Shown piece by piece: positions 7,001-60,076 of a DNA stretch of 64,000 nucleotides. Made by a program: the position numbers and the translations under genes. Origin of the DNA: Callorhinchus milii (lineage: Eukaryota); NCBI RefSeq assembly GCF_018977255.1, contig NW_024704771.1, positions 3,472,001 through 3,536,000 on the forward strand, written 5' to 3'. The notes below the pieces were generated by a model. It was not told the origin of the DNA and did not search any database. It worked only from the letters and a program-made list of their open reading frames with translations. Numbering within the stretch: the first letter of the stretch is position 1; every line of letters starts with the position of its first letter.

Positions 7001-9594
7001 AAGGTATTAGGCGTAGCTCGGCAGGAGTCAGGACTTGGGGAGACCCCAGCGTGTGTGTTGTGATAACTGCTGGAGTGTACCCAGCTAAAACCGCATAGTT
7101 TGCCCTTGATAGTACTGTCGCTTGCCCTACGAGCCCAATAATCTATTTAGCCAGGTATTTTCTGTATTCATTCTCAAAGTTTAGGCGTTAGCTCTTATCT
7201 GACTAACACAGTCTGGAAACTTATGCATCTGGAAACAACACACACAATATATACGTATAAAAAATATTACATAGGGTGGAGGATTTCAAGATGCCAGCAC
7301 ACGATTGGGAAAAAAATGCTTAGAAATAAGGCACGGTCCATTACACCAGTAAGACTTACCTTCAACTTGCAGGTGTATATAGTGCAGGTGGGTAACCACG
7401 CTCTCTCCCGTTTCAGAAAGTCGGTGTTTACTCAACAAATAAATCCCAGAGTCTTTGATTTCTAAATGTTTTATTTGAAGAGATCCCAACTTTTGATCAA
7501 AATGTATTCGTAGTTTGTAATATGTATTGTAAGTATGATGGGCACTGACTGTATCGAAGCTCACAATTTGTATCATTCCATAGCGCGTGAGATAGTACCA
7601 ATCAAGTGTTTCCTCTTCAGTAATGATTGTTGTATCAATTCCAGGCAATAAAATGGAAGAATGCGTACTTGTAGCAAGGTAAAGTCGAGTTAATATTTCT
7701 GACTCACCTGAAATATTCACAAGAATTCATCAGTTAATTTTGCAACAAATAATAACTTGACAACTATATTATTTGGTGTGAAAATGAATTCAAAACCATA
7801 CACAATAACAACCTCGCATTTGATATAATTCCTTATCACGTCGTTGAGACGTCTCAAAGCGCTTCACAGGATATACTGTAAAGTGGATTGACCGTATTTT
7901 GAGGGTGGAACGCTAAATCTAAAATATGTAAATATAAAAAATATTACATAAGGTGGAGGATTTCACGATGCCCGCACATGACTGGGAAAAAATGCTTTAA
8001 CTTTAATATGCAATGCTAATGACGGAATGTTTCACAGAAAAAGGCGGTTCAGTCCATCAGGTTTACGCTGCCAATTCCCAACCCACAGAATCATCGAACT
8101 GTACGGCACAGGAAGCCATTCATGACTATTTGTGGGACACTGCTGTGCGCAATTTGGCCCAGAAAATGCACAGTCAATCCACTTTGCAGTATATTCCGCG
8201 AAGTGCTTTGAGATGTCTCAGCGATGTGATAAGGTGCTTTAGCAAATAATAATCAGAATCCTTGCATTTGATATAGTACCTTATCATGTTGGAGGGACAT
8301 TAAACGCAATATCCAAATTCACGCGAACCATTAATTGACCCAACGGTTACCATGAGTTGACTGTAACGCGTCACGGGACCTATTTTTGGCTTGAAGAACC
8401 GACGGTTTAAAAACAAATCTTCAAGGACTATATTCTTTCCTCCTTCAAGGCCGGGACTCGAGACCTTTCTCTTCGACCGTGCCGTCAGCTCCCCTCTCGA
8501 CTCTCTACCCCCTCCTCGCCCCCTCCCTCCCCTCACCCTGACCATCTCCCCCCTCCTCACTTCCTCCCTCCCCTCACCCTGACCGTCTCCCCCCTCCTCG
8601 CTCCATCCCTCCCCTCCCGCTGACCATCTCCCCCCTCCTCACTCCCTCCCTCCCGTCACCCTGACCATCTCCCCCCTCCTCGCTCCCTCCCTCGCCTCCC
8701 CCTGACCATCTCCCCCCTCCTCGCTCCCTCCCTCGCCTCCCCCTGACCATCTCCCCCCTCCTCGCTCCCTCCCTCCCGTCACCCTGACCATCTCCCCCCT
8801 CCTCGCTCCCTCCCTCCCCTCCCCCTGACCATCTCCCCTCTCGCTCCCTCCCTCCCCTCCCCCTGACCATCTCCCCCTCTCGCTCCCTCCCTCCCCTCCC
8901 CCTGACCATCTCCCCCTCTCGCTCCCTCCCTCCCCTCCCCCTGACCATCTCCCCCTCTCGCTCCCTCCCTCCCCTCCCCCTGACCATCTCCCCCTCCCTC
9001 CCTCCCCTCCCCCTGACCATTTCCCCCACTGATCCCGACCCAACTGTCCGGCGCCTCAGGACGTCCTCCCGACGTGAAAGGCGCTCTCTAAATGGAATCT
9101 TGTTGTTGCTGTTGTACTCTGGAATAGGTACCTAATGACCATAATAAACACAAAAATGGAGAGACACAAAAGAAATGCGAATGGGCTGTTCCCAAAGAGA
9201 GCTTCGCGGGTTACACCGCGACAGTGTACTTTGTGAGTGTTATCACAATAACCCGCTGCACAGTCAGTAACTCGGCCACTCAATCCACGGCTGTTTGCGG
9301 GGACGCCGCTGTGCTGCCGCGTTTCGCCCACAATGTAATGCAGTCGACGAATCCACTTTAAAATATACTCCGCAACAGACACCGAGACGTCCCGACGGCA
9401 AAACACATCTCTGTACGAAAACGGAAAGATTACGGTTATGGCAGTGAAGGAGGGGCGGCGCGTGGGCGACGCTTCACTCACTCACACACAGAGAGAGAGA
9501 GAGAGAGAAATAACACGCGGGTAAAGCAAGAGTTCGCCAATGTCCGCTTACCCTGAGGCGCCAGGAGGAGCAGGAGAGCGGCTGTGAGCAACAT
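922..9594 (-). CDS. Gene A (multi-exon): signal peptide-IgV(CD2/SLAM-like)-IgC2-multipass TM receptor; 3' end runs off the left edge of the window
   Basis: Seven GT-AG bounded exons joined by phase-1 introns (43+348+252+117+102+129+108 nt) splice into one stop-free frame of about 366 codons; every exon has a same-sized counterpart in genes B and C. Confidence 0.88.
2514..2642 (-). CDS. Gene A TM exon 3
   Basis: tttcag|..AACA|GTGAGT, 129 nt; [43 protein letters not shown]. Confidence 0.85.
4130..4231 (-). CDS. Gene A TM exon 2
   Basis: tcatag|..GAAG|GTATGT, 102 nt; [34 protein letters not shown]. Confidence 0.85.
4355..4715 (-). mobile_element. Same SINE, older long variant (dozens of other full or partial copies, e.g. 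690-870, 3290-3615, 19265-19580, 46620-46985, 56310-56650, 61050-61445)
   Basis: Retains the central ccaccaatc..gggttcc..tactgct.ggtaaacag segment. Confidence 0.8.
4760..4876 (-). CDS. Gene A TM exon 1
   Basis: tttcag|..CAAG|GTAATA, 117 nt; [39 protein letters not shown] (manual translation). Confidence 0.85.
5880..6131 (-). CDS. Gene A IgC2 exon
   Basis: ccatag| acceptor, AACG|GTAGG donor, 252 nt; LSC..IWW..TLIL..DCGWYTC..N.VS. Confidence 0.9.
7360..7707 (-). CDS. Gene A IgV exon (CD2/SLAM/CEACAM-N type, no B-F disulfide)
   Basis: ttcag| acceptor, GAAG|GTAAGT donor, 348 nt; SILLPG..LDWYY..RIHF..GSLQI..DSGIYLL..LQVE, with Leu at both canonical Cys positions. Confidence 0.9.
8520..9020. repeat. 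Pyrimidine-rich minisatellite of about 40-45 bp units (ccctgaccatctccccc..cgctccctccc) inside an L2-derived element
   Basis: About 12 imperfect tandem units seen directly. Confidence 0.9.
9552..9594 (-). CDS. Gene A exon 1, signal peptide [14 protein letters not shown](G)
   Basis: ATG at 9594, hydrophobic leader, donor CAG G|GTAAGC in phase 1. Confidence 0.85.
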
Positions 9595-10175
9595 TCCCGC
9601 TGCCTGACTCCAGGGCGAGGGACAAGTCACAAGATGGCGCCCAACGGCAACTCCGCCCTTTTAACGGCCACAGTTCAAAACGAAAGACAAACAAAGCGGC
9701 GACTGGCGCCGCTGTCCGGCTCTCTGGCCCCCGCCCGCCCCGCCCGCCCGGGGGCCGCTCGCTCGGTAACGCCGACTCCGCCCGTTCCGCCGCCTTCAGT
9801 TCGGCTCCGAAGCCGCTTCTCCTTCGCCTCTGACAACGGTGTCAGTTTGTCCGCCTCCCGTCCCCCCCCCGCTCACTCACTCACTGCGCAGGCGCCGACC
9901 TCCCGTCCCCCCGCGCTCACTCACTGCGCAGGCGCCGCATCGCCCGTCCCCACGCGCTCACTCACTCACTCACTGCGCAGGCGCCGCACCGCCCGTCCCC
10001 GCGCTCACTCACTGCGCAGGCGCTGCACCGCCCGTCCCCACGCGCTCACTCACTCACTGCGCAGGCGCCGCACCGCCCGTCCCCACGCGCTCACTCACTC
10101 ACTCACTGCGCAGGCGCCGCACCTCCCGTCCCCCCCCCCGCGCTCACTCACTCACTGCGCAGGCGCCGCACAGCC
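9595..10175 (-). promoter_or_regulatory. CpG-island promoter of gene A with YY1 motif, GC boxes and 7 NRF1-motif repeat units
   Basis: CAAGATGGCG at 9630-9639 (YY1 consensus); CCGCCC runs at 9730-9750; TGCGCAGGCGC x7 in 9885-10166. Confidence 0.75.
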
Positions 10176-11825: not shown

Positions 11826-11838
11826 CTAGCGAGCATGC
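11826..11838 (-). CDS. Candidate gene B last coding exon (R)HAR-stop, followed by 3'UTR
   Basis: tttatttcaatctag| acceptor; phase fits the 34-nt exon; AATAAA on the minus strand at 11562-11567. Confidence 0.3.
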
Positions 11839-12413: not shown

Positions 12414-12466
<53 letters not shown>

Positions 12467-17992: not shown

Positions 17993-18328
17993 CAAGAAGG
18001 GTGACATAATAATAATTTAATAATCCTTGCACATGAGATTGTGCCTTATCATGTCAGAAGGATGTCTCAAAGCACTTCACAGGAATTACTGTGATGTGGA
18101 GTGACCATATATTTGTAGGCAAATATGGCAGCACAATTGCGCACAGCAATGTCCCACAAACAGTCATGGATTGAGTGATCCAATTATTATTTCATCAGTG
18201 AAATAGAATAAGTATTTGAACAAAATTCGAACAAATATTAAGGCAGTGAAAAACATATTTTATATATAATGCCTGGTTCAGCTCATAACCAATGTGAAGA
18301 TATATATATCTGAATGATTATTACTTAC

Positions 18329-18436
18329 AGAATTTTCCTAATAAGAGTAAAATTATTCCAACAGCAACGAAATAGACCATCACTGCAATTGTGACTTTTA
18401 TTGACAGCTCACTATATGGGACGCTGCACAATGTCA
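18329..18436 (-). CDS. Gene B TM exon 4
   Basis: tccacag|..TTCT|GTAAGT, 108 nt; [36 protein letters not shown]. Confidence 0.85.
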
Positions 18437-21400
18437 CTGTGGATAGAAATATGAGAGCCTGAATTAATAGTGATAATCCTTGCATTTGAGACATCTCAAA
18501 ACGCTTCACAGAATATAGTGACATGCGATCTTTAAAGGCCACCACAGTGTAAGACAACACTTGTTTCACACCACAGTAAGAGTCAGCACTGACAAAATTC
18601 AGCACACATTTAATAATAACAATCTTTGCACTTGATATAAGAACATAATATAAGAATTTGCTAGGCAGAAAAAGACCAAAGTCCATCTTCTTCATCTTCC
18701 ACCAGTTTGTCTCAAAGCAGTTCACACAATGACGTGTTGTTGTGACTGTGTATTTTGTGGGAAAATCGCGTCAGCCAATTGCACACAGCAGTGTGTCACA
18801 AACAGTTGTGGATTGAGCGACCAAATAATTTTTTTTTTGGAAAGATCGACTAACAACAGGGTTCCTAATTACTGTTAGGTAAACAGAGGCATGTGAAGCA
18901 AGGAATCTTTCCTAAACTTTCAGCCCGCCCTGGAATTGGACCCGGGTCCTCTCCCTTGCGAGGTGAGTGCGCTAACCTGTATGCTACAGGAATATCAATC
19001 AAGGTACAAACCAAGCCCCTGAAATTTTAAATCATTTGAAATACAAACAGAAGTATAACTGATGATCACTTTCGACTTTTTTAACTTTATTTTGAAATAC
19101 TCACTGTTTGTATGCGCTGCATAAAGCGGGACACATGAAATCAATATAGCAAATATTCCATATCCAATAAAAATATTACGATGCTCTGCAAGGGAATAAA
19201 ATTTGAACAAAAAAATAGAGAAGTTTACTCGTGCACTCGAGTATAGGGTGACCAAAAAGATGTGATAATAATAATAATAATCCTTGCATTTGATGTAGCA
19301 CTTTTCATGTCTTCTAGACGTCTCAAAGAGCTTCACAGAATATACTGTAAAGTGAATTGACTGTATATTTGTGGGCAAAATGCAGCAGCCAAATTACGCA
19401 CAGCAAATCACAAAGAGTCATGGATTGAAGTGACCAATCTATTATTGTTTTTTTTCTTGAGGGATTATTATCAGGCGTGTGGAGTAAGGAAACTTGCCCA
19501 AGGTTTCGCCCTGCTGGGAATCGAACCCAGGCCTCTCGCTTGAGAGGAGAGTGCTCTAACCACTGAGCTACAGGACTCCACATACAATTACAATGTCTAC
19601 TAAGTCTTAAAGAAATGTTATCATCATAGAATCATATAGCACAGAAGGAGACCATTCGGTTCATTGTGTCTGTGCCAGAGGTGAAAAGAGGTGTCCAAAT
19701 CAATCCCATACCCCTACTCCCTCCCCATAGCCCTAAAAAGCTGACCACACACACACACATATTGGATAATAGGGAAGTTATGACTTTTTGGTCACATTGT
19801 AGTTACTCTGCTTCTATGATTCTGTCAACCATTCAGCATTTATTAATATGCATTTCGTTACCCACCCCACCTGGGATTCAAACCTGGGTCCTCTTGCTTG
19901 CAAGGTGAAATCGATAACCACAACATGACAGGACTCCTTAACCAGAATATACAGAGATAGTATTGTTTTAACTTACTTGACATAACTAAAAATGACACTG
20001 GTAGATCTTTCTTAGAATGCAGGAAACAGTAGGCAACGTAGCTAAACATTAGTAAAACCATGAGCATTGTGACTCCTGAGATAATCCTGTATTCCAAATG
20101 AAATCCTAAAAAGAAAGGGCAATGTGAAGATTGTGGTGAAATGGAAAGAATGCTAAACTGCAATCATCTGAAAATATACTACAAGATTCATACCTATGCT
20201 CATCAAAACAATTTATCTTAAAATATTAAATTGCTACAATTTCTAAGCATTTTACATGCACGATACATATATGGAGACACAGAAAATATATTTGAAAGGG
20301 ATTCCTTTGTGGGTGTAAAATCCATAGAATTTTGCAAAATTTCTGGAAATCTCCCTACTTCAGGTGAAATGCAGGGGGTGAACCTGGATTGAATCCTGTA
20401 ATTCCAGTTTTCATGTTTTACATGACTTCCACTACCAAATTATTTTGTTGATAACAAGTGCCCAGAATTTCAAGGAGGAAGATGAACAACGCAAGCCAGG
20501 GGTGGGATACTGGGCTTTGTAACAAATAATGTTAGATATAAAAGTAAGCGAATGCCACTGCTGGTAAATCAGAATTTGGTCAGACCTCAATTGGACTATA
20601 TTCAAGTTTGGACACTTAATTTTAGAAAGGATGTACTGTAATGAGAGAACTACTATTGCAAGCAATAGTAAAGACTATACAGCTACGTGAAGATTGAGAA
20701 TAATAATTATACAATAATCCTTGCATTTGATATAGCACCTTATCACGTCATTGAGACGTCTCAAAGCGCTTCACAGAATATACTGTAAAATGGATTAACT
20801 GTATATTTTGTGAGGAGTGAGGAAGGGGAGAGGAGTTAATGGAGACAAAGGTGGGTTAATGAATCGAAAGAACTTTCTTACAGAATCATAACATTTTACA
20901 GCATAGAAGGAGACCATTCGCCCACTGTGTCTGTGTAGGCTCTTTGAAAGAGCTATCCAACTAGTTCCACTAGCCCGCTCTTACCCCATAGTCCTGTAAT
21001 TCTTTTGTTTTGAAGTACATATCCAATTCCCATTTGAAAGCTATTATCAAATCTACTTCCACCACCCTTTCAGGCAGTGTTTTATCTTAACTGTACACCC
21101 CTTTGCCCTTCCCCCCAACTCCTGCCTACTAGACATGTGCAGGTGAAAAGGAGTTATTGCCTGCCTACAAAAGAATCATTCTTTCGTAAAATCTCATATG
21201 GTGTCTGATGATGATAGAAGTTTTGTGTTTTTCCTCAATTGTAAATAAATTGCCCATAGCCTTTGACATAACTTTCAAAAGAGAATTGGGCAAGTAATTA
21301 TGAAGGGAAAATGTGCAGGGCTGTGGGGTAAGAGTGGAACTAGTTGGACAGCTCTTTCAAAGAGCTGGCACAAGCACGATGGGCTGAATGGCCTCCTTCT

Positions 21401-24400
21401 GTGCCATTCTATGACACACTCTGAAAGGCAGAAAAGTAACAAGGCACAAGTTACAATTTTGTAGGAATCATAAATGTTGCTTGTGGGAACTATTGCTCAT
21501 CCATCAGTAGAGATGAAAGCATGGAGAAAAAATAATAATAATTTGATAGAGAGTGAGAAAGCACCTTATCACATTGAAATGGTTCAAAGCGCTTCACACA
21601 TGCACTGAGTACTAATGCTAGTGATCTTTTTGTTACCTGTTTATCACGGAGAATCCAGTATAAAACTAACTGGAACAAAAAGATAACTAAGGTTAGTAAT
21701 CAATGTGTAATAGATCCCAACGGGTTACATGGAAGTGTAGTAACTGTTGTTATTGGCAAAAGACCACAATATATATCAATAATTGCTTTTCCGGGGGTAA
21801 TAATCCCTTCTTTTTTTAAAAAAATTAATAATAATTTGGTCACTAAATCCATGACTGTTTGTGGGACAATGCTGTGTGCAATTAGCTGCCGCATTTCACC
21901 CACAAAATACACAAGTCAATTCACTTTACATTATATTCTGTGAAGCGTTTTGAGACGTCTCACTGACGTGATAGGGGGCTGTATCATATGCAAGGATGAT
22001 GATTATCATTATTAATAATAACTTACATGGGCCAGCAAAGTCCAACAAAGAGCAACAACAATTTTTTTTAAGGAGACTAGGATGAGAAAGGAATATATAG
22101 CTCATACTCAAGAAGAACGCTCTACTTTTTTGTTGGTCCGACGGGTGTCTGACACATGTGGAAGCCCAGAGATAGATTGGTGGAATAGAATGTGCACTCT
22201 CGCCCTGGAGGGTCACATCCTGCTTTTCTAAGTCTGGAAACTATTAGGCGCAGGTTGGCAAGAGGGGATCCCAGATTAATTAATCAACTTATATCAATAA
22301 CAATTAATTATTTCATATCAATGACAATTAACTTATCATATCAATAACAATTAATTAATTTATCACATCAATAATAATTAATTAACTTATATCAATACAC
22401 AATAGCCGGACTTGACGTATGATTATATTTAATAGTGCTGTAAGATTCTATGCGATCTTGAATATGGTTCATGCAGAGCTCAACTTTGTTTCTAGAGTGT
22501 CTGTGGATTGCTGAGTTTTGTATGCTTTTGCTTGACACAAATTGGTGATGAAAGGAAACAAGATGGTTTAACTTGGAATAAGTTAGATAAGTTTGAAATT
22601 CACATATCTATAAAACAATGCATCCAAACACATTCTGTGAAGTCGATCACTGCAAGATGTGCAAATCTTGAAATCAGATGCTGGCATTGATAGAAGTTGT
22701 TGATAATCTACCAGGAATGTATTCAAATAAACCAAGGACAGCAGCAGATTCAATGGGCATTATTCAACACCATACACTCTGGGAGCAAATTCATTATTGT
22801 GGGCGCATTCTGAGACGCTACCCCGTGTGAAGGGCGCTATATAAATGCAAGTTGTTGTTGTAAAACCCACCTCTGCTCTAGGTGGTAAGTTGCATAAATT
22901 TGTTCATATCCAGTTAGAAATAACTGTAACAGCAAATGGGATAATATACCTTTACAATGATAGCGAACTAGTAGTTAAATCACATAACTACTGTTTGTGA
23001 AACTTGCTTGAATGGCACAGAATAGTGTTTATTCCACAATGGCCGAATTTGTTCCCTGGAGGCGTGGAGAGGAATAATCACCAAAGAACTCATTTTGGAA
23101 AAGTAAAACAATTTCCGAAACTAGAATCAAATGTGCCTAAAACAGTCACTACACTTGACAGTAATTACCTGTGAAGCGCTTTGAGATGTTGTGACGTAAT
23201 AAGGCGTTATAAAAATGCAAGTTCTCTCTTTCTTCTAAATTTCGAATATTTCCGGTTGTATGGTTCAGCTACTCACTGGATAAACTCTCTGAGCCATCGG
23301 GGAGCTCTTAAGAAGACATGTTAATGTGAAAAGTGTAGAAGTTGATATAGACATGAACTACAGTGGCAGTAACTTTAGCCGGATGCTGATTAACCCTGGA
23401 CACCAGGTTGTATTCTCACCCGTTTTAAATATGCTGGTAATTTAGACAAAACATCCAGTTAATCCGAGCAAAATGCTGCGCTGGTCATTGCTACGTCAGC
23501 TTACTCGCCTCGACTGTCTCCGGGAGGGAGATGAGAGGAGTGAAATTGTGATTGACTGACAGCGGAACCAGCCATTTACAAGTGGCTTAAAGGTGTCAAT
23601 CGGTAGCGGAACAGGGAAGAAACAAGGGAGGAAATGGAAGGAGTCACATCGTTATTGATTGACAGTTGAATCGCTTGTGATTGAGTGGAGTGCCCATTCC
23701 AGGCTATCAATCATCTCGGAGCTGCCATGAATTGGTCCCCTTCCTGTCCAATGGGTGGGAGGAGCCGCTTGTCTGCTGGGCGGGAAGAAGTAATGGTACT
23801 TTGTTTAACCTCGGACGTGGCTTAAACCGGACAAAACGACCATCCCAATGTGTGTCCGGCTTAAGCTGCTTCCACTGTATATACATTAGCTAAACAGCAT
23901 GGAAAAATGACTTTTGTATTAAAATGCAACTTTAATACAAAGAAAGCTACACTTACCTTTGTCTAATATACCCAAAAGAGATCCAATCAACTGACAAGTC
24001 AGGGATAGCAATTGAAAGAGCACACAAATAGCACTGAGTTGCGCCTGATGCTTGGAAGCTACCAACACAACAAATGAAATGATTTCAACAGAATATCAGT
24101 GTATGAGGACGTCTGAATTTTTAATTTTTTTTAAAAAAAATTGCTTCAAATCTTTTAAATTGTCTATGAACTTGTAATGTAATGATCTTCACAAAAATGT
24201 ACCTTTAAATTTCTTCAAGGCATAGAAGATTATCAACAGTATTGAAGCAAAGGACATTACAGTACTAATCAGTGAAATGACAGCAGCCATCAGTGAATTT
24301 TGGTGAGCATACAGAATACCTAAAACAGAAAACTAACGTAAATTTTCTCTACTTTACGTAAATCATTCAGAATTCTGCGGCTTGTGACCTCTCCCTCACC

Positions 24401-40705: not shown

Positions 40706-41044
40706 AGAGTCGAGAGTGGAGCTGAAGGCTGAAGGCCAAAGAGAAAGGTCCTGAGACCGGCCTTGAAGGAGGAGAGGGAGGAGGCGGCGAAGGCACTGGG
40801 GATGGGGTTCCAGAGCCTCGGGGCTGAGAGGCTGAAGGCCCGACCACCGATGGTAGGGCGGTTGGGGCGGGGGACGTGGAGCAGACCGGAGCCAGAGGGA
40901 CGGAGGGTACGGGCAGGTACGTGGGGGGATAGTAGGTCGGAGAGGTACGAGGGAGCGAGGCCGTGAATGGCCTTGTAGGTGAGGATAAGGATCTTGAATT
41001 CGATCCTCTGGGGGATGGGGAGACAGTGGAGGCGAGCGAGGGTG

Positions 41045-43190: not shown

Positions 43191-45865
43191 TTCTTTGCAA
43201 ATTTTACCCCTGAAACATATCCAGAACCAGAATCCAACATCAGCTTTCACACTTCTTTATGGGTTTACAATACACAAAAATCAAACAACCTGCACTAACG
43301 TAGCTTGTTTCATGTAGGACAAGTGTCTTAAAGGGCTTCATTGAAATGATTAAAGAGAGGAATGAGAATTTAAGAATTTGACTAAATGCATCATCAAAGA
43401 GTTTGAGTTTTAAGAATGCTGAACGATGGGGGAAAGACAAAGGCAAAGCTTTTTGGGAGATTTGTACCAACAACAACTTGTATTTTTATCACCTCGGAGC
43501 TCTTAACAGTGGTGGAGCTGGGGAGAGGTGACCGTAAGCATGGTGGCAGAGATCAGGGAAATGAATAGGTTCAGACACTGATGGTATGATAGAATGAAGA
43601 AGGAGCATGAGGTGAGAGAAAGATTAGCAGAGTGAAGGTGGATGAACAGAGCTGGAGGACATAGTTCGGAGAGGGAGGGCAAAGACTGTAAGGGGTTTGA
43701 AGGTTAGGATAAGCCTTTCAAATTGACTGGCTGGAATACTGCAAGTCAGTGCAGCATCTAAGATTATGTTTGTGATACTTACTGTTTTTAAAGACCTTTA
43801 ATTAGTTTACTTTTAAAATATAACGAAACACTTATAACCTGTTTCGTATAGCATTCCTTAGCTGTTAGGGCATAGACAAGGCTGTGTGTTTTTAATGACT
43901 AACTGAGGGACCTTGAGGGTAGATGTGCCAATTAGTGTTAGCAAAGGTATGGCTTGACCCTAGCTGTCAGGCTCTGATAACTTTCCCTCGCTCGGTGCCT
44001 TGGTCCCATTGTCATCCTCCCATCTAAGAATGGTGCAATCATGTCCTTGAGCACGGATGTGAAAACAAAGAGAGAAGCGCCTTCCTGGAAATCTGATTAG
44101 CTCAAGATTGAGAAACAGAAATCCTTCCAATTAGCTGTCCATAACTCCTTCTCCTTATCGGTTATTTTCCCATGCGAAAAGAGCCTGCCAAGAATGCTAG
44201 CAGCTTGCAAAAAATGGGAGCTGTCTCTGTGACAAGGGAGGTGGTGTTAGAAACAAATAATAATAATCGTTGCATTTGATATAGCTCTATCACATTTTCA
44301 AGATGTCTCAAAGCCGTTCACAGAATATACTGCAAAATGAATTGACTAAACATTTGTGGGCAAAAAGCAGCAGCCAATTGTGTACAGCAGTGTCCCACAA
44401 ACAGTGGGAGATAAAATAAACAAACATAAGATTATATAACTTTGAAATAATTGGAGTTGTGTCGAGGGTCAGCGCACTTCCCAATGGAATAATATTGATT
44501 CTACTGTATCTATGGTCTCAGATAAGTCAAGTTATTTGTATTACTTAATAAACCTTGGATTATTACACCACTGTATTATGAACTGCCGAGGTTTATAATA
44601 ATAATAATTTGGGCACTCAATTCACAGCTTTTGTGGAGACTGCTGTTGGTTAATTGACGCAATTGACTGACACATTTCGCCCCAAAATAAACAATCAATT
44701 CACTTTACAGTATATTCTGTGAAGCACTTCGAGAAGACACAATAAGGCACGCTATAAAATCAAACTATACTGTGTGTGTATATATAATATGATTTGAGCT
44801 TGAGTGAGAACCTGACAGAGATGTAGGTTTAAATAGTTTGATTCTGGTTTAAGTAGGAAACCATATAATTTGCAATGAGGTCCTCTCATAAACTGAACTT
44901 ACCTTAGAATGGTATGCACTGCTCATAAGGATGGTGATTTTGAATCTGATTCATTGAATATTGTAATGTCTTTTTCCAAATCTAAATGCTTGTTCAATAC
45001 TGTAATCACAATATAAACACGTTCCATAAAAAGCTCTGGTGAAAGCAGAAAGCCTCAATATCATCAATCTTCCAAATCAGCAACAACAACTGGCATTTAT
45101 ATAGCACACTTCACACTATGAGCTTTAAGCGGGGTCTCAGATGTTTAACAGCGGCAGAGCCTGATTCGAAGCCGGGGATAAGGAGGAGGTGACCTTTAGC
45201 ACGGTTGAAGAGCAAAGTCTTCAGTTGTGATCTAAAAGAGTGAAACGAGGGACAAGGTAGATCACGTCGTCGAGACATCTAAAAGCACTTCAGATATACT
45301 GTAATGTGAATTGACTGTATGTATATTTGTGGGCAAAATATGGCAGCCAATTGCGCACAGAGGTGTCGCACGAACAGTGGTAGATCGAGAGACAAAATTA
45401 TTATTTCTTTTTGAAGGGATTACTACCTCCAGAAAGTTAATAATAATAATCCTTGCATTTGATATAGCGCTTTTCACGTCAGGAGAGTCCAAGCGCCACA
45501 ATTCTAGTGAACAGAAGTGTCCCACAAACATGTGGATTGAAAGGAAATTATGATTGATTTTGGTTTTGGAGAGATTATTAGATTTTAGGCTCTGTGTGGA
45601 GTAAGGAAACTTGCCCAAGGTTTCGCCTTCTGCCTGGAATTGAACTCAGGTCTCTCACTTGCAAAGCGAGTGCTCTAACCACTGAGCTACAGGACTCCAT
45701 GGCAATAAATTTAAGTTTAACAATACAAGATATCAGATCAGATGACATTCAAAGCAAATTTAAATTCAGGAATCAACAAAACATAATTGTTAGCAACTAC
45801 TGCAAGTCATTTTTTGACAGAAGGTCTTGTTATATTATTAATCTAAAAATATAATGATTACTTAC

Positions 45866-45973
45866 TGATCTTTGCAAAAAAGAGAAGGAATATTCCAAAG
45901 GTAGAAATATAGATTATGATTGCAAACGCATTTTGCATTGCTAACTCAGTGCTTAGAATATTGCAATCTAGAA
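45866..45973 (-). CDS. Gene C TM exon 4
   Basis: tccacag|..ATCA|GTAAGT, 108 nt; [36 protein letters not shown]. Confidence 0.85.
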
Positions 45974-48900
45974 CTGTGGACAGAATTGTGATAGACTGAA
46001 TTACAATTCAAAGATTTGTATGACCAAAGCATACTATTTCCAACAGATGTTCCTTGTATATATGCATAAACAGACAGACACAACATGCTACAATATGTAT
46101 TATGTATTTTAAAATAGTAAAATCACATTTTCAACACTTTGAGTAAGTATATATGAATGAAGCAAATACACGAAGCATTGCTTCAGCTGTAAAATCTGTT
46201 TTTAATTTTTCAAGATGTGGGATAAAAGTGCCACTTGGAGTTCAGTCCCCACCAGTGACAATTCCTTAGAAAATTCCCTGACAATCGCACAACTTGTAGC
46301 ACTGCTATCACACTTACCGCTGTCAAACTTACTGGGTCAAAACTTTGGACCCCTCAAACCAAACACTGCGCATGTGCTCCCACCATGGCACCACAACACT
46401 TTTACTTTCCAATCTGTTTATTGTTCTATGGACTACTCACCACTTTGCCTTATTTGGTAAATGGGGACAGCTGCAACCAGAGAAGAACACACTCCATATG
46501 CGAGATAAATATTATGCCGATCTGTTAGTGGGTAAATTTTGAATAAATAAAAATCAGGCAATTTATCCAAGTGCTGTACATGCCGTGCATACTGGGAAGG
46601 TGACTCAAGGAGTATAAATAATAATAATCCTCTATTTGATATAGTACCTTATCACATCATTGAGACGTCTCAAAGCACTTCACAGAATATAATGTAAAGT
46701 GGATTGACTTCGTTGTGGGTGAAACATGGCAACCAATTGTGCACGTCAGCGTCCCACACACCATCGTGGATTGCCAAATTGTTATTATATTTATTTATTT
46801 TTGAAGGGATTATTGACAGAAAGTGAACTGCCAATTAACTAACAAGTGGGTTCCAACTTACTGCTTGGTAAACGGAGGCACGTGGAGTAAGGAAACATGC
46901 CTAAGCTTTCGCCCTGCTCAGGAATCGAACCTGGACCCTCATGCTTGCGAGGCGAGCACTCTAACCACTACTCTGCAGGACTCTTAATTTATACCTACAC
47001 ATTGAACATCTGCTAAAAATCCATTTCTAGCCAAATTGAACTTACAAGTATTTAACAAAACTGATGTTACGTTGATATCAGGATTCAGGAAAATGAAGAC
47101 AGAATAGCCCATCATTCCGGAAACAATGACACATCCAAATCCCGAGACCAGTTTGTATTGTATGCCCAAATCTAGGAAAGATCAATATAAATACTATGGT
47201 GAACGGGATACATGTACAACTACAACAACCTGACAGTGTTTTTTGGGGTCAGCTGGGTACCTGATTCATGCAGAGACCCATCACAATGTTTAATAATAAT
47301 AAATAATAATAATAATATAATAATCCTTGCATTTGATATAGCGCCTTGTCACATCTTCAAAATGTCTCAAAGTGCCTCACAGAATCTTCTGTAAAGTGAA
47401 TTGACTATATTTTGTGGGATGGCAGCCAACTGCACACAGCAGTGTCCCCCAAACAATTGTGGATTCAATGTCCGAATTCTTCTCATTTTGGGGGGGATTT
47501 TGAAGGAATTATTAACCCAGGAAAAGCAATTTGCTAATCGACTAACAACTGGGTTCCTAATTACTGCTAGGAGTGTGGATTAAGGAAATTTTCTCAACAT
47601 TAAGTAGTAAGAGTAACCAGACTGAGAATACCTACTCATGCGTATCGAACACGCATTCTGCCACTGGAGGGACGCAACCTGCTTATTTAATTCCGGAGAG
47701 CATTAGGTGCAATATAATTCCTATTTGTCAGAGAATAAGGTCGGTAACCTACGACTTTAGATGTTTTAATTTCAAATCAGAATGTAACACAGACCACAAG
47801 ATGTGTTTGAAACCTTGACTGCTACAGGCAATATGGATGCATAGCACAGTGGATGCAAAGCCCTTCACGGCCTTACTCCTTCCTACCTCCATGACCTGCT
47901 AACCACAGCCTGACCTGTTGCTCAATCTGCTCAGCGGGCTCCGGCCTGCTCCATGTGCCTTGGCCTTCCTGCCCCACCATCAGCGGTTGGGCCTTCAGCC
48001 TTTCTGCCCCCACCTTTTGAACTCCATGCAACAGTCCCTTTGCCTCACTCCCTTCCTCTGTCTGCTTCAAGGTCTCTCATAATGCCTTCCTCTTTGACCA
48101 TGCCTTTGGTCACCCTCCTACCCTCACCCTACCTGCTCTCCACCCCTACTGATCCCAATCCCCAGCTTGGGTACAAATCCCTGACTGCCTTGGGACCTCC
48201 TCCCTATGTGAAAGGCGCTAAACAAATGCTGTTTTTGTTGTTTACAGATCACCAAATCTCACTTACCTTACTTACATCTTATGGTTAGTTTATGGCTCCA
48301 AAGACATTTTGATACATGGCATCTTTCAATGTATTTGCTATAAACTGTAAATGTAAACAACCTTTAGTGAAGTTACGTAATTTGGTATATTGAAGTATTT
48401 ATTCTCTGGTATCCATTTACAAAATGGCCACTTAATTGCAGTGCTCTGACAGTTCACAAACAACAACTTGTGTTTATACAGCACCCTTCACGCAGAGCAG
48501 CATCTCAGAGCGCTTCACAGTGGTATTTAGTCATGATTTAAAGAGGCAAGGCAGGGGGATTGGGGGAGAGATATCCAAAGGAATTGGGGGAGATTTCCAA
48601 ACAAAAATAAATATTTCAGCCATATGAATGCAGTAAATATAATACTATTGAGTATGTATGATTCCCGCCCACAAAAAAATATTGGTGCTCTATAAAGTTT
48701 ATTTACACCACTCACAAATCTTATGAATTTTCAATTCTGACAGCTGCACAATAATCTTTGATTCAAGTTTGCTTTTTGAAAAAAGTTTGTCTTGGGATGT
48801 GGGCAATACAGTGTCCCGCAAACAGGGATGAGGTGGGTGACCAATTTTATCCAGCGGATTTCTAGCCAGGACCTGCAAGAAATAACTTTCTTTTTTCACT

Positions 48901-51900
48901 AATCCACCTGAACAAGCTGACAGGACCTTGGTTTAATCTCTCGTCTGAAGAAGAGCACTATGAGCCCAATATAAGGCTTGAACGCACAAACTTCTGACTC
49001 AGTAGTGAGTGCTACCACCAGCTTCTTGGCTTCTATTTGACAAGAGAACAAATAAGGAACAATTTTATGTTGAAGTGAAACATGTAGAATTAAACAGGAA
49101 CATGGTTTGGCATCTGCTAAATGTGACAGAAATGTTTGTGGTAACATACCTTCAGTTATCATGCAGAAAAGAGATGAAGTTAAGAGAGTGATAAAAGCAA
49201 GTAGATGGAAGCCCATAAAAATCCCAGTGAGCTGCACTTGGAGTTTGTGATCTGTAAATACAAAAATGATATACTAACTAGCTTTGCTTCATTCATGTTT
49301 TCATCGTGCAACAACAAAATTACATTTATAGAGCGTCTTTCACGTCAGGAGGACATCCCAAAGCGCTGGACAATCAGGGGTGAGGACCTGAGTATGGGGG
49401 AGGGGTGGGGTAGGGGTGAGGGAAGGCAGAGAGGTGGGAGGCCACTGAAGGCATGATCAAGGAGGAGGGTCTTGAGACCGGCCTTGAAGGAGGCAAGGGA
49501 AGAAATGAGGCAAAGGGTCTGTGGGATGGAGTTCCAGAATGTGGGCGCAAAGAGCCTGAAAGCCTGGCCAACAATGGTAGGGCGGGTCGGGCGGGAGACA
49601 TGGAGCAGGCCAGAGCCTGCTGAACAGAGGGAGCAAGCAGGTTGGTAGAGAGTCAGCAGAACAGAGAGGTAAGAAGGGAAGGCCATGGATGGCCTTGAAA
49701 GTGAGGACAAGGATCCTGAATTCGATCCTTTGAGGGATGGGAAGCCAGTGGAGTCGGGCGAGGGTGGGGGGAGTGATGGGGTCATGGAGCTGGTGCGCGA
49801 GAGTACACGATTGCAGAGTTTTGGATGATCTGCAGCTTGTGAAGGGAAGAGTTGGGAGGCCGATGAGGGAGCTTCCATAATCGAACTTTGACGTGACGAA
49901 TGCGTGGGTGAGGGTTTTGGCAGCCTGAGGGGTGAGGCAGTGGTGGAGTCTGCCAAAGCTGCAGAGGTGGTGGTAGGCAGTGTCGGTCATGGCACGAATG
50001 TGGGGGAGAAAGGACAGTTCAGGGTCAAACAAGACAGCCAGGTTCCTGACTGGCTTAGTGAGGTTGAGTATGCAGCCGTGGAGGCCGATGCTGCCAGCGC
50101 CCGAGCCAATCAGGAGGGCCTGGTTTTGCTGCTGCTCAGTTGGAGAAAGTTGTCCCTCGTCCAGGACTTGATGTCGGACAGGTAGTCAGGCAGGACGCCA
50201 GTAGTCCTGGAGTTGAGGGTGGAGGCAGAGAGATAGAGTCGGGTGTCATCCACATACATGTGGAAATACACCATATCAGCGGATGATGTCACCAAGGATG
50301 AAGAGGAGGGGACCGAGGACAGAGCCCTGAGGAACAACAACAACATTCCATTTATAGAGCGCCTTTCACGTCGGGGGGACGTCCCAAGGCGCTGAACAGT
50401 TGGATCAGGACCCGAGCAGCGGGGGAAATGGTCATGGTGAGGGGAGGGAAGGGAGGGAGCGAGGAGGGGGTAGAGAGTCAAGAGGGGAACTGAAGGCACG
50501 GTCAAAGAGAAAGGTCTTGAGACCAGCCTTGAAGGAGGAAAGCGGCGAAGGCACTGGGGGATTGAGTTCGGGGCTGAGAGGCTAAAGGCCCGGCCACCAA
50601 TGGTAGGGTGGTTGGGGCGGGGGATGTGGAGCAGACCGGAGCCAGAGGAACGGAGGGTACGGGCAGGTAGGTAGGGGGATAGTAGGTTGGAGAGGTAGGA
50701 GGGAGCGAGGATGTGAATGGCCTTGTAGATGAGGATGAGGATCTTGAATTCGATCCTCTGGGGGATGGGGAGCCAGTGGAGGCGAGCGAAGGTGGGAGTG
50801 ATGTGGTCGCGGTGTCCGGTGCGGGACAGTACACGAGCTGCAGAGTTCTGAATGACCTGCAGTGTGGAGGTAGGGCCGGGAAGGCCGGCGAGGAGAGAGT
50901 TCCCATAGTCCAGCCTTGAGGTGATACCTCTCTGACTGCACTTTCAGTAATCTTTCCCCTCCCCATCCTCTTAAGCTCCCACCTCCCCTCGCTCAGGTGC
51001 CCAGCCAGCAGTGTGAAGTGCTTTGAGATGTCCTCGCAAAATGAAAGGAGTCATATAAATGTAAACTGTGTTGTGTATTTCAAAGTCTAAATACGACTTA
51101 CGTTGAATTTAAATATTTAATACCGTCCATCAATTTGTAATAAATGCATTCCCCAAAAAAGTTACATTTCATATTACCTTTATATTTCTTCATGCCAAAG
51201 AAGATTATGTACGCTGCCACACAGAGAGTCATTGCATTACTAATCCATGCTATGACTGATGCGATTAGAGTATGTTGGTAAACTAGCACAGCAGCTGAAA
51301 CAGGAAAAAAATGGATTTACTTACTCACTGTACATCACAAACTAATGTATGCAGGTCACACAGAATTCCAAAGTAATGTTAAAAATTATGATAATCCTTG
51401 TATTTGATCTAACGCCTTACCACATCATCAAAACGTCTCAAAGCACTTCAAAGAATATATTGTAAAGTGAACTGATTGTGTATTTTGTGGGCCAGACAAC
51501 ATGAATAACAACTTGCATTGATATCGTGCCCTTCACGCATCCTGAAGGGCTTTGGCGTTCCCCCGCTGTCACAGTGTTCAATGGCACACAGCAGTGTCCC
51601 ACAAGCATTGGTGGATTTAGTGACCAAATTATTTTTTGAAAAGGATTATTACCCCATGGAAAGTGATCCAATCAACTAACAATCAATGTTTTATTTTAAA
51701 ATAAATGAAAGCACCTGAATAAATTAGACACTGCTTGATGTACTTCTTTTTTTTAAAAAAAATGAACATTTAGTTTTATATAAGCCACCAGTAAAACGGC
51801 CAATGTTGTACATTAGTGTAATTACACTGGAGTAATTAATGTAATTGAAAAAGAATTTGAATAGCTTCAATAAAGGGAATGAGGACAAAATGGGAAGTGG

Positions 51901-54900
51901 TATTTTGTGTGTTGTCTCTGTGTGGTGGTGTACTGGGATTCATACACATATATTAATAACCTGGATCCGCAGACCCAAGTAAAGGTAGTTACATTTGTGG
52001 ACGGCAAAAGAACCAGAGAGGAGATTCACTTTACAGTATATTTTGTGAAGCAGTTTGAGACGTTTCAACAAAGTCTTTCACTTGTAAGGTGAGCGCTCTA
52101 ACACTGTGCTACAAAATATACATGTCCTCGTTCTTCTCCTTTCTGTCCTGATTACATATTCTCCCATCTCGAGGTCTGAACAATTGCATCCTTGAGCTCG
52201 ATGAAAGGATATCCCGAGGCAAACGTAGGCAGGCTTGTGAATCAGATTAAGGACAGGGAAGAGGAGTTAAAAACATATAAAGGAAGAAATGCTTGGACAA
52301 ATGGAGTCGCCATACAGGGTCAACGCGTTTCCCAGTGGAATTGGGTAATATCGATTTTACTGCGTCGATTGTCTCAGTTTGAAAAATAAGGTTGGCTAAT
52401 CTGCTGAATGTTTGCGTTGCTTACTTAATAAACTTTGGACTATTACCCAACAAATTGGTGGTCTCCTCCTGAATCTGTTACAGCGTCACATCAATTGCAA
52501 AGATTATTATTATATAGAGCCTCATTCCATAAGAATTTGGTGCCATAAGAACTAAAGTACAGTATATCAGACCATCCCATAGTACCTTGGTACCTTGGTT
52601 CAATTTTCCGGTAGGGCAAAATGTTAAACAAGTCTCATTACTCCACACGCCACTGTTTACCTAACTGTAAGTAGGAGCCCAGCTGTTAGTGAATTGGGGG
52701 ATCATTTTCCGGAAATAATCCTTTCCAAATCAATAAATAATTCAGTAAAATAATAATAATAATTTGGTTACTCAATCCACAACTGTTTGTGGGACACTGC
52801 TATGCATAATTGGCTGCTGTGTTTTGCCCACATATTATACAGCCAATTCACTTCACAGTATAGTCTGCGAATTGCTTTGAGACTTCTCAATGATGTGAAA
52901 AGGTACTATATCAAATGTAAGGATTATTATTATTATTATAAAATCAAATGGTTACAAAACCTACCGTTGACAACAAGAAAGTGGGAATAGTTTCTCTGGC
53001 TGATGGAGTTTTTAACGTAGCACATGTACAAACCACAGTCTGAGAGTTTTGCATTTTGAATAATATATCTGTTTTGTTTTTTTCTTTTGTTTGTAAGTTG
53101 TATCCCTTTGTGTGTCCACCAAACAATGTCAGGCTTCCCACTTTTGACGATACAGTTCATCTCAACAACTTTTGTTACATAGTCGGGTTCTTGAATTATC
53201 AGTGGCCTTGATAATTTTTCTATTGAAATAAATAGTTTCACTTAGAGGTGCTAAAGATGTTTGATTCTGAAAATTACATTTTCAATTATCAACAACAACC
53301 AATTACATTTACACAGCGCCTTTCACGTTGGGAGGATGTCCAAGGTACTCGACAGTCAGAGATTTGGACCCGAGTAGGGAGTCGGGATCAGGAGGGCAGC
53401 GAGGTGGGGTAGGAGGGTGACCGACGGCGGACCCCCATCTCACCAGTTCTGGCCGGGCTCCACTGGTTCCCCATCACCGAATGGATCCACTTCAGGATCC
53501 TCACACTCGTGTTCAACTTCACTCCCTGCACCTCCCTACCTCTCCGACCTCCTCACTCTCCAATCTGGCACCTCCACTTGGCTGGCACTTGTCCCTTGCA
53601 TCCTCAGCTCCACTATTGGAGGTCATGCATTCAGCCACTATGCCCTAAAACTCGGTAACATCCTCCCTCAATCCCTCCACTTCGCCTCCCCTTTTTCAGA
53701 TCCCACCTGAAAAACTTCCTTTTCAACTGTGATTACGGTCACCTCTCCCCCCAGCTCTGAGTCAGGCTCTGCCACTCTGAGATGATACTCTGCATGGAGG
53801 GCACTATATAAGTGCAAGTTGTCATTGTCAAAGAGAAGGGTGTTGAGATGGGCCTTGAAGGAGGCAAGAGAGGTAGCAAGGCGAAGGGACCTCGGGATGG
53901 AATTAAAAAGGCACATTGCAAATTCAGCAAATCAGAATCCTAATGCCAGTTGCAGGTTATTACAATTAATAATAATTCTTCCATTTGATATAGACTTTCA
54001 CATCAAGAGGTCAGAAATTTGCACACAGCAAAGTCCCACAAAGCCATGAATTGAATGACCAACTTTTATGTGTGGGGATAGAATGCTGGGGGACTGTTGA
54101 CGAAGACATGGGAGACATGCGCTTCTCTTTTTGAATAGTGCCATGTGATCTTTAACATCCACCTGAACAGGCAGATGAGAAATTGTATTTATATAGCACC
54201 TTTCGTTTCCGGAGGATGTCCCAAAGCCCTGGACAGTTGAGGATTGATACAAGAGCTGGGGATGGGAAGATGACCAAAGGAACTGTCAAAAAGGAAGGCC
54301 TTGAGATGGAACTTGAGGAAGTGAGGGAAGGGACAAGGTGAAGGGACTGTGGGATGGAGTTCCAGAGAGTGGGGTCAGAAAGCCTGAATGTCTGTCTGCT
54401 ATGGGGGGGAAGGGAGGGGTAGGAGACCTGATGCAAGCCAATATGGAAAATGACTGTTTCCTGAGGTTTGTGGTCCTGCATTGGTTACAGCACTGGAGGA
54501 CCTGTGTCCTGGACAGGGAAGTTATTAGGCAACATTCGGCAAGTTTCCCTACTCCACACACCTATGTTTACCTTGCAGTAAGCAGGAACCTGGTTAGTGG
54601 TTGAGTGTCACATCTCTTTCTGGAGGAAATGAACACTTCAAAATGTTTTAAAAATATCAATCTAAATTCACGACTGTTTGTGGGACACTGCTATACACAA
54701 TTGGCTGCCACATTTCTCCAACAAAATATACAACAACAACAACAAAATTTGTATAGCACATTGCATGTCAGGAGGACGTCCCAAGATGCTGGACAGTCAG
54801 TGTTTTGGATGCAGTCAATTCACTTTACAGTATATTCTGTGAATCACTTTGAGAACATCTCGAAGGCATGATAAGGCGCTATATCAAATGCAAGGATGAT

Positions 54901-57555
54901 TATTATTTATTTTCTTGAAAGTCAGAAACGTTGTTGCCTACAGTTCTGTGAAAAAGTGTTCACTATGTTTCTGTTGCTGATGGAGACCAGAGCAAAGTTT
55001 ACAAACTTGAAGTCACAAACCAAAGGTCAAATACAACAAACCCAATTCTGGAAATATACAATATCAAGAAAGCAAACAGAATCACAACACATTATTTCAC
55101 TGCAGCAGTCAGCAATGCACCATGTGGTTCAATATGGCTAAATGACACTAGATACATAGGAACAGGAGGCCATTCAGTACCTTGAGCCTGTTCCGCCAGT
55201 CCATAAAATCATTGCTAATCTGTACCTCAACTCCAATTACAACAACAAATTACACTTGTATTGCGCCCTTCACGTAAGACAGATGTCCCAGGACGCTGGA
55301 CAATCTGAGTTTTTGGACCCGAGCTGGGAGTTGAGGTCAGAAGGGGAGGAGGGCAAGGGTTGGTGGGAGGGGGACTGAAGGTACAATCGAAGAGAAAAGT
55401 CTTCTGATGACACTTGGAGGAGGCAAGAGATGGGCTGAGGCATGGGTTTGTGGGATAGAGTTCCAGAGTGTGGGGGCAGAGATGCTGTATGTCTGACTGC
55501 CAATGGGGAGCAAGAAGCATGGGGGGACCTGAACAGGCCACCGAGCGGAGGGACAAATTATCCACATTTGAGGCAAATTACCTGCATTTGCTCCGTAGCT
55601 CTTGATACCCTGACCTAACAAAAATCTATCAACCTCAGTCTTAAACATTTGAACGGATCCAGCATCCACAGCCTTTTGGTGGAGAGAGTTCCAGATTTTT
55701 GCTCCCCTTCGTGTGAGAAAATCCTTCCTGATTTCACTCCTGTCAATTGCTTCCCATAAAAATAAGTTCAAAAGAATACTTAGCGATTGAGAATTCCAGT
55801 GAAAGGAAGCAAAGAGAACTTACCTTCAACATGTAAGTATCTATAGTAGAAATTAGCAATTTTCTTTTCGTCTTCTGCTTTTTTCGCTAAATCAAGCAGG
55901 TAAGGGCCAGTGTCCGCTTCTTTTAAGCGTTGCAGTATGAGAGATCCACTGGTTGAATTTATCAGTATTCGATTTTGGTAATAAGCGTTAACTTCAACTT
56001 GAGAAGAATTGTATTCATACTTCAGAATAATTGTCTTTTTGACAGGAGTGAGATAGTACCAAATGATCACGTCGTCTGTTGTGAATTGCCTATGTACAAT
56101 TCCAGGTAGTGAGATGAAAGAACGTGCAGCAGCAAAAATATAATTGAGGGTTGTGTTTTCAGAAGTCGCTGAAACATTGGCAAGAAAATTAATTAACATC
56201 AAATGAGTTCATTGCTTTCCGTAAAAAAGGTCAAAAGAATACTTAGCGATTGAGAATTCCAAGATGCAGTCCAGTGGAAGGAAGCAAAACAAATTTATTA
56301 TTTAAACATAATAATACTTTCATTTGCTATAGCTCCTTACCATGTCATTGAGACATCTCAAAGAGCTTCACCAAATATACTGTAAAGGGGATTGGCTGTA
56401 TATTTTTGCGTGAAACTCGGCAGCCAATTCCCCAAAGCAGTGGCCCACAAACAGTCATGGATTGAGTGACCTAATTATTAGTTTTTGAAGGAATTATTAC
56501 CCCTGAAAGAAATCCACTAATCGACTAACATCCAGATTCCTACTTACTGTAGATAAACAGAAGTACACGGAGTAAGGAAACTTGCCTAATGTTTCGACCT
56601 ACGTGGAATCGAACAGGGGTCCGCTCGCTTGTGAGGAAAGTGCTCACAACGTTTGTGTATTTGTAATAACAAAGAAAGGGACTACTGATGTAATTTACTA
56701 AGCCAGAAAATTGTAAATTAAAGTCACAATATGATTAGGCAGAGTCAACATGGTTTTATGAAAGGGAAATTGTGTTTAACGAATCTTTTAGAGTTTTTTG
56801 AAGATGTAACCAGCAGGTTAGATAGAAGGGAACCAGTGGATAGTGTTATTAGCTTTTCAGAAGGCATTCAACAAGGTGCCACATAAAAGGTTGTTACATA
56901 AGATTACGGCACATGGAATTAAGGGTAATATATTACCATTGAACGAAGAGTGGTTAACAGGCAGAAAACAGAGAGTAGAGATAAATGGGTCCTTCTCAGA
57001 TTGGCAGGGTGTGACGAATGGAGTGCCGCAAGGATCAGTACTTTGGCCTCAACTGTTTACAGTCTACATCAATGACTTAGATGAGGAAATAAGAGCTTAA
57101 TGTATCTGAATTCACGGACGATACAAAGCTACGTGGGAAAGTAAGCTGTGAGGAAGAAACAAGGAGGATGTAAAGGGATATAGGCAGGTTAATTGAGTGG
57201 GCAAGAAGGTGGCAGTTGGAGTATAATGTGGAGAAGTGTGAAGTTATTTACCTAGTAGGAAACATAGAAAAGTGGGGGAGAGGGGAAGAGACTAGATAGT
57301 GTTAGTATTCAAAGGGATTTAGGTGTCCTTGTACCACCAATCACAGAAGGTTAGCATGTAGGTACAGCAAGCAATTAGGAAGGCTAATAGCACATTAGCG
57401 TTTATTGCAAAGGGATTAGAGTACAAGAGTAGGGAAGTCTTACTGCAATTGTATAGGGTCTTGGTGAGACCGCACCTGGAATATTGTGTGCAGTTTTGGT
57501 CTCCTTATCTTGGAAAGGATATACTCGCCTTAGGGTATATATATATTAGTATATG

Positions 57556-57593
<38 letters not shown>

Positions 57594-59535: not shown

Positions 59536-60076
59536 TCCCGCTGCCTGACTCCAGGGCGAGGGACAAGTCACAAGATGGCGCCCAACGGCAACTCCGCCCT
59601 TTTAACGGCCACAGTTCAAAACGAAAGACAAACAAAGCGGCGACTGGCGCCGCTGTCCGGCTCTCTGGCCCCCGCCCCGCCCCGCCCCGCCCGGGGGCCG
59701 CTCGCTCGGTAACGCCGACTCCGCCCGTTCCGCCGCCTTCAGTTCGGCTCCGAAGCCGCTTCTCCTTCGCCTCTGACAACGGTGTCAGTTTGTCCGCCTC
59801 CCGTCCCCACGCGCTCACTCACTGCGCAGGCGCCGCACCGCCCGTCCCCGCGCTCACTCACTGCGCAGGCGCCGCACCGCCCGTCCCTCCCGCGCTCACT
59901 CACTGCGCAGGCGCCGCACCGCCCGTCCCCGCGCTCACTCACTGCGCAGGCGCCGCACCGCCCGTCCCCGCGCTCACTCACTGCGCAGGCGCCGCACCGC
60001 CCGTCCCCGCGCTCACTCACTGCGCAGGCGCCGCACCGCCCGTCCCCCCCCGCGCTCACTCACTCACTCACTGCGC
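59536..60076 (-). promoter_or_regulatory. CpG-island promoter of gene C, 6 full NRF1-motif units plus one partial
   Basis: Near-identical to the A and B promoters; array 59823-60076. Confidence 0.75.

Follow-up and report, generated by a model that had tools for sequence, protein, structure and literature searches.

A near-identical promoter and leader exon on diverged tandem receptor-like genes of Callorhinchus milii, probably maintained by repeated gene conversion

The 64-kb stretch of Callorhinchus milii DNA analyzed here (the window) carries three tandem genes, A, B and C, all on the minus strand, whose predicted products of ~395-402 residues comprise an immunoglobulin (Ig) V domain, an Ig C2 domain and five transmembrane helices. 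We conclude, with a probability of roughly 0.78, that these genes belong to an old tandem family in which the first ~0.5-1.1 kb has been kept identical by repeated non-allelic (interlocus) gene conversion. The underlying observation, a promoter-leader block (or cassette) shared by paralogs with strongly diverged bodies, is real, highly non-random and wider than first described, and regional gene conversion is very probably the mechanism of the block's identity.

The promoter-leader block and the genes that carry it

We delimited the core of the block as the interval from the proximal end of a GC-rich minisatellite to the eighth base of intron 1 (donor+8). Alignment of the three cores bears out what the first-pass annotation had described next to an identical 43-nt leader exon (14 codons plus one base): no substitution separates A from C, which are told apart by two one-base (single-C) indels within a run of GC boxes, and B carries three substitutions against both A and C. 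Against this stand the gene bodies, where the V domains share 27-33% protein identity (38 of 115 residues for A and C, which confirms an earlier count of ~37), the C2 domains share 37-43%, and the seven body exons taken one by one share 24-58%. Nei-Gojobori synonymous divergence (dS) over these seven exons is 0.47-2.55, at or near saturation, and in a maximum-likelihood tree with elasmobranch homologues the window paralogs lie 1.6-2.7 changes per site apart, compared with 0.14 between the Mobula and Hypanus homologues. The introns had been called not alignable, which holds for most of their length, where matches run through transposable elements only; the description does not hold beside the block, where A and B share ~60 nt more of intron 1. 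Collinear fragments of long interspersed element (LINE) reverse transcriptase in intron 1 of B and C (38469-39837 and 56725-58060, plus strand; 77-83%) were considered as an old shared tract and rejected, because other LINE pairs in the window are about as alike; independent insertion is their probable origin.

The block extends beyond the window. A profile of the A, B and C V exons, searched against 1.8 billion representative proteins, recovered three C. milii products with the same first 14 residues and differing bodies, namely LOC103189488 and LOC103189487 (NCBI-derived models) and A0A4W3IIQ8 (UniRef). Beside genes A to E, P0080 is a sixth gene product with this 14-residue leader. Among the 150 profile matches, sharing of an N-terminus occurs within the C. 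milii set only. The window's own A, B and C proteins were found in neither protein library. That database models of three genes (LOC103189488, LOC103189487 and A0A4W3IIQ8) start with the leader supports its predicted use as first coding exon. The first of these is a RefSeq model, the second RefSeq-derived and the third a UniRef entry, and the last two probably stem from an older or different annotation.

A second C. milii locus (L001; GenBank MU249860.1), which does not overlap the window, holds three more family genes, Z, D (LOC103189488) and E (LOC103189487), and two more cassettes, with leaders at L001:10001 and L001:24276 on D and E. When all five cores are aligned, A, C, D and E are free of any substitution and B has three private changes, while indels are confined to the GC-box run, where A lacks 2 nt and D lacks 5 nt. 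Over the 94 kb examined, each of the five copies immediately precedes a family gene and shares its orientation. The leader of Z falls beyond the bounds of L001, so the cassette status of this gene is outside the five-copy count. Z itself, upstream of D (L001:571-4993), has a V exon at 571-933, a C2 exon at 1808-2113 and two transmembrane exons located by tblastn (~2864-3004 and 4820-4993).

The promoter elements of the core were identified by motif matches alone and comprise a run of GGGCGG boxes at -157 to -142 from the ATG, a TTAAAA box at -70, an additional GC box at -64 and a YY1-like CGCCATCTT at -44. The 318-nt core has a GC content of 0.67 and a CpG observed/expected (o/e) ratio of 0.99-1.05, against 0.43 and 0.51 in the whole window; core and minisatellite array together reach 0.67-0.73 and 1.05-1.16. 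GC content at third codon positions (GC3) is 0.79 in the leader and 0.37-0.43 in the gene bodies. Judged by its length (>200 nt), GC content (>0.55), o/e ratio (>0.6) and position directly upstream of the first exon, the core qualifies as a CpG island, and by its composition and motifs the block reads as a CpG-island promoter ending in a predicted signal-peptide exon. No CTCF-like motif was seen in the core by eye, no formal scan having been made, and an Rfam search returned tRNA-like heads of short interspersed elements (SINEs) only, with no match in the cassette. Long plus-strand open reading frames run through the cassette and minisatellite and were taken as a by-product of GC-rich sequence.

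The GC-rich minisatellite lies upstream of all five cores, with units of 39-49 nt numbering 7, 8, 6, 5 and 5 in A to E and with private variants in each. Three other tandem arrays in the window have no sequence kinship to it: a C-rich array of 12.6 units of 41 nt in intron 1 of gene A (8504-9011), an 18/42-nt G-rich array just upstream of the gene B minisatellite and an adjacent SINE (41031-41448), and 10 units of 32 nt farther upstream of gene A (14450-14897). A run of 142 N (60372-60513) lies ~300 nt upstream of the gene C minisatellite, outside the cassette.

To sharks and rays the block does not extend. Homologues in Pristiophorus, Heterodontus, Chiloscyllium, Rhincodon, Mobula, Hypanus and Narcine have leader peptides unrelated to that of C. 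milii, and a whale-shark gene with the same short first exon has a moderately GC-rich upstream region in which no similarity to the cassette was detectable. The unrelated leaders and the dissimilar whale-shark promoter thus indicate that the block is not an ancient ultraconserved element; for the classic test of concerted evolution, the shark and ray comparison is too distant.

Tract ends, tree conflict and competing explanations

Pairwise comparison of the flanks of genes A-E, over 3 kb on each side of every ATG, indicates that the shared sequence ends at different points in different pairs (Table 1). At least three independent groupings of flanks can be recognized. A and D alone have 41 nt (90%) in common just upstream of the array; within intron 1, A and B are set apart from C, D and E; and the D-E stretch takes in ~140 nt of unique intron, identical but for one position, as well as a common junction with a SINE fragment. 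None of these groupings fits the coding tree. They were set from the flanks, independently of the tree, and forcing them on the body alignment is 27.5 log-likelihood units worse for an A+B clade (approximately unbiased test, p-AU 0.010) and 45.3 units worse for a C+D+E clade (p-AU 0.0003). The unconstrained body tree places B, D and Z beside one elasmobranch group and A, C, E and P0080 beside another, with weak support (65/68). Intron similarity of C to E and to D was also considered as shared ancestry and rejected, as it is a SINE.

Overlapping tracts with differing ends around a core that is identical throughout argue for repeated non-allelic gene conversion. The first-pass suggestion of recurrent conversion, or recent copying, of one cassette is therefore well supported by several features that characterize this process: near-identity is sharply bounded (0-3 differences in 318 nt against dS of 0.5-2.5 in the bodies), two extra identical copies are present at the second locus, the varying tract ends form a mosaic, and the history of the block, as read from its flanks, is discordant with that of the bodies. 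The raised GC content (0.67-0.73 against 0.43, and the leader GC3) also agrees with conversion, though weakly, since any CpG island would show it.

According to this reading, the homogenized stretch would consist of the GC-rich minisatellite, a ~270-nt CpG-island promoter with 5' untranslated region (5'UTR), and the 43-nt leader exon. A conversion tract would have to begin and finish within sequence that is still homologous, so that the minisatellite would limit the island on its upstream side, and non-homologous intron on its downstream side. Homology ends 8-90 nt into an intron 1 of 1.8-9.4 kb, and a tract therefore cannot reach the V exon, which conversion, on this model, would never have touched. 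The bodies may have drifted or diversified below the identity that recombination needs, while the island would renew its own identity. The CpG island or the minisatellite may act as a break-prone initiator of exchange, exchange may be continuing today, and the outcome would be common regulation and a common signal peptide.

Several points weigh against this interpretation. The comparison covers one holocephalan genome only, so that clustering of cassettes by species or by orthologue falls outside it. A core with 0-3 differences carries no phylogenetic signal, and the case accordingly rests on the flanks and on the contrast in age. Saturation, and no dated split, is the basis for that age, and the body alignment is compatible with a single clade of C. 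milii paralogs (p-AU 0.14); our claim is accordingly confined to the paralogs being old and does not place them before the split of chimaeras and sharks. Identity was read from the assembly, in which polishing could in principle have homogenized paralogous copies. Finally, most pairs would look much the same after one recent burst of cassette copying.

Such a burst would have pasted a promoter-leader segment of ~0.6 kb once before each gene, replacing older first exons, with no continuing exchange. Four copies without any substitution, and the lack of a divergence gradient among the A, C, D and E cores, are what it would leave behind, but the flanks fall into three independent groupings (upstream A+D, in the intron A+B and C+D+E, deeper D+E), which, with tract ends that vary by pair, point to several events, and the minisatellite arrays differ in unit number and private variants. 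Such copying would, moreover, mechanistically still be ectopic conversion, and we consider a one-time burst unlikely. An artefact of assembly or polishing, in which a single real promoter was duplicated into several paralogous positions or served to correct them, has to be taken seriously where GC-rich repeats lie beside a minisatellite and are hard to assemble, and where A, C and D differ by run-length indels only, as is typical of sequencing errors. Every copy, however, has unique flanks and its own array, distinct in unit number or private variants, B retains three substitutions, and the same leader stands in the models of at least three genes (LOC103189488, LOC103189487 and A0A4W3IIQ8) whose accession series and sources differ and whose assembly and annotation generations may differ as well. 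An error of this kind is thus very unlikely.

The promoter-like motifs of the core (GC boxes, the YY1-like CGCCATCTT and the TTAAAA box) and the functional-looking signal peptide raise the question of whether purifying selection on an essential regulatory element and signal peptide could by itself, with no exchange between copies, have preserved the block. We find this highly improbable, as identity covers synonymous sites, 5'UTR and spacer bases while dS is saturated in the same genes, the flank groupings conflict with the body tree, and the homologous leader and promoter are wholly different in elasmobranchs. A mobile element, or a promoter and exon borne by a transposable element and inserting by itself, would likewise yield a discrete multi-copy block in a region rich in such elements, yet the five copies all point the same way, each at the 5' end of a family gene and with a phase 1 junction to its V exon. 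Common ends, terminal repeats and target duplications are absent, boundaries vary by pair, and no further copies occur within the 94 kb examined, so that an explanation by transposition is scarcely credible.

Gene architecture and protein resemblances

The window is DNA of vertebrate type with many SINEs and LINEs. Genes A, B and C each consist of a leader exon, V and C2 exons of 345-354 and 252-267 nt, and five transmembrane exons, which the first-pass summary left unmentioned, of 117, 102, 129 (126 in C), 81 and 116 nt, with one hydrophobic helix per exon and all frames intact; all 21 introns are in phase 1 with GT-AG ends. The V exon encodes a domain devoid of cysteines. Within the 9.4-kb first intron of gene B lies an additional, canonical V-set exon (Cys...Trp...Cys), flanked by good splice sites and in phase 1 on either side; it could be spliced between leader and V to give a three-Ig product. 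This exon has a weak resemblance to PVRIG/CD200-type sequences, and gene D also has an additional N-terminal V-like exon, unrelated to that of gene B.

Other features of the exons deserve mention. The C2 exon has an extra cysteine (D/E-C-G-W/L-Y-x-C) that is kept in A, B and C (5880-6131, 26653-26919 and 52965-53219, minus strand) and in elasmobranch homologues, and the start of the last transmembrane exon (914-1029, 18321-18436 and 45858-45973, minus strand) has a cysteine that is invariant across the same set. That last exon ends in ...AAG TAA in all three genes, with the stop codon overlapping a strong GTAAGT donor (914-922, 18321-18329 and 45858-45866, minus strand), and D and the elasmobranch homologues have a basic tail that is longer than in A, B and C. 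The overlapping donor and the longer tails make alternative splicing to undetected tail exons, as in CD47, possible.

The best superpositions of a structural model of the ectodomain (mean predicted local distance difference test score, pLDDT, of 71) are with CD48, CD58, CD2 and CEACAM1 (target TM-scores 0.75-0.82), and the best non-repetitive sequence matches in the PDB are CEA and CEACAM1. The ectodomain may be of the CD2/SLAM and CEACAM type, a disulfide-less V domain followed by C2; the single-pass or glycosylphosphatidylinositol (GPI) anchor of those families does not fit the five-helix anchor found here. The five-helix part has no Pfam match, and its model, taken alone (pLDDT 77), gave no significant fold match. 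CD47 has the same layout of an Ig domain and five transmembrane helices with one helix per exon, but the canonical IgV disulfide is absent from the cysteine-less V domain of the present family. No match to CD47 (PF04549) was obtained in Pfam, in a PDB sequence profile or in two Foldseek fold searches with the five-transmembrane model, although helical folds are easily missed in this way. The family therefore has the layout of CD47 without demonstrated kinship to it, and we found no paper in the literature on this cartilaginous-fish Ig/five-transmembrane family.

Table 1. Coordinates of the family genes, their promoter-leader blocks and the sequence shared between copies (window positions unless given relative to the ATG)
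Feature	Position	Strand	Remarks
Gene A leader exon	9594-9552	-	identical 43 nt in A, B and C
Gene B leader exon	40078-40036	-	identical 43 nt in A, B and C
Gene C leader exon	59535-59493	-	identical 43 nt in A, B and C
Gene A core	9859-9544	-	316 nt; GC-box/YY1-like promoter, 5'UTR, leader exon, first 8 nt of intron 1
Gene B core	40345-40028	-	318 nt; three private substitutions
Gene C core	59802-59485	-	318 nt; zero substitutions against A
Gene A minisatellite	9857..10175	-	GC-rich, ~7 units of 40-49 nt
Gene B minisatellite	40366..40706	-	8.1 units of 41 nt
Gene C minisatellite	59800..60076	-	~6 units of 39-45 nt
Gene A body	914..7707	-	V 7707-7360; C2 6131-5880; transmembrane exons 4876-4760, 4231-4130, 2642-2514, 1612-1532, 1029-914 (stop)
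Gene B body	18321..30429	-	V 30429-30076; C2 26919-26653; transmembrane exons 24319-24203, 24058-23957, 20105-19977, 19185-19105, 18436-18321 (stop)
Gene C body	45858..56168	-	V 56168-55824; C2 53219-52965; transmembrane exons 51294-51178, 49251-49150, 47171-47046, 46521-46441, 45973-45858 (stop)
Extra canonical V-set exon	35303..35635	-	in intron 1 of gene B
Extra intron 1 sequence (~60 nt), A and B only	9484-9543 / 39968-40027	-	1 mismatch; ends at microsatellite
A-B shared stretch	-581 to +92 from ATG		
A or B with C, D or E, shared stretch	only to +53 from ATG		
C-D and C-E shared stretch	to +94 from ATG		into CACAG/CTACAG-type repeat
D-E shared stretch	to ~+640 from ATG		adjacent genes

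Known parallels and what the block may mean

Conotoxins, frog skin peptides and beta-defensins combine a constant first exon or signal region across paralogs with mature parts that diverge fast, a pattern for which the usual explanation is faster evolution of the mature part following recent duplication. The C. milii genes differ in that the remainder of the gene, including introns and synonymous sites, is old.

A closer parallel in layout is provided by the SSSGP-1 salivary effector genes of the Hessian fly (Chen et al. 2010, PMC2955719). These form a tandem cluster that combines a highly conserved promoter, 5'UTR and signal-peptide region with a highly diversified mature-protein region, and the authors propose concerted homogenization together with positive selection. 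The conserved promoter, 5'UTR and signal peptide and the diverged mature part are common to SSSGP-1 and to A, B and C. The fly genes, however, encode secreted insect effectors, have a conserved intron and 3'UTR as well, and are young genes within 15 kb, whereas the C. milii genes encode vertebrate multi-pass membrane proteins, are homogenized over the first ~0.5-1.1 kb only and have synonymously saturated bodies.

In the clustered protocadherins of a teleost, fugu, repeated regional conversion has produced >99% identity and raised GC3 (Yu et al. 2007, PMC1852091), and here, too, sharply bounded near-identity lies beside diverged sequence in tandem paralogs. The converted part of the protocadherins is the 3' part of a large variable coding exon, in contrast to the promoter and separate 43-nt leader exon of C. 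milii, where there are no shared constant exons. The earlier characterization of the locus as the reverse of the protocadherin layout is accordingly a metaphor only, since every gene is complete in itself, with eight exons and a stop codon of its own; A, B and C form neither a protocadherin-type locus, in which alternative exons are spliced to a shared set, nor its mirror image. Ectopic conversion between neighboring Ig-superfamily receptor genes is also known from paired receptors (CEACAM, PMC2832619; Siglec-11/16, PMC5701461), and a tract between dog CEACAM1 and CEACAM28 takes in the leader exon and intron 1 together with ~1 kb of sequence upstream (PMC2832619). Those tracts are centered on the ligand-binding exon and keep it alike, whereas in C. 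milii the V exon is excluded and only ~30% identical. Regional gene conversion is thus a process already known, and it is the gene family that is so far undescribed.

In practical terms, a single primer in the leader or 5'UTR should capture the transcripts of all members. Shared regulation of the paralogs is a plausible, though putative, consequence, and the block raises the question of whether selection for common or competitive regulation acts on the shared CpG-island promoter or whether this promoter is a passive hotspot of recombination. One speculative answer, which we regard as distinctly unlikely, is that identical CpG-island promoters would serve as interchangeable units of promoter choice, through which the tandem genes, like clustered protocadherins or KIR, would compete equally for one distal enhancer common to them all. 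The set of diversified Ig/five-helix surface proteins on a given cell might then be a stochastic subset, and continual homogenization of the promoters, while the ectodomains diversify, would be favored by selection for equal competitiveness. With ~320 unique bases identical on at least five genes, while the other ~400 codons and the introns have diverged to saturation, the block offers an unusually clean natural case of how short a self-maintaining island of homology can be.

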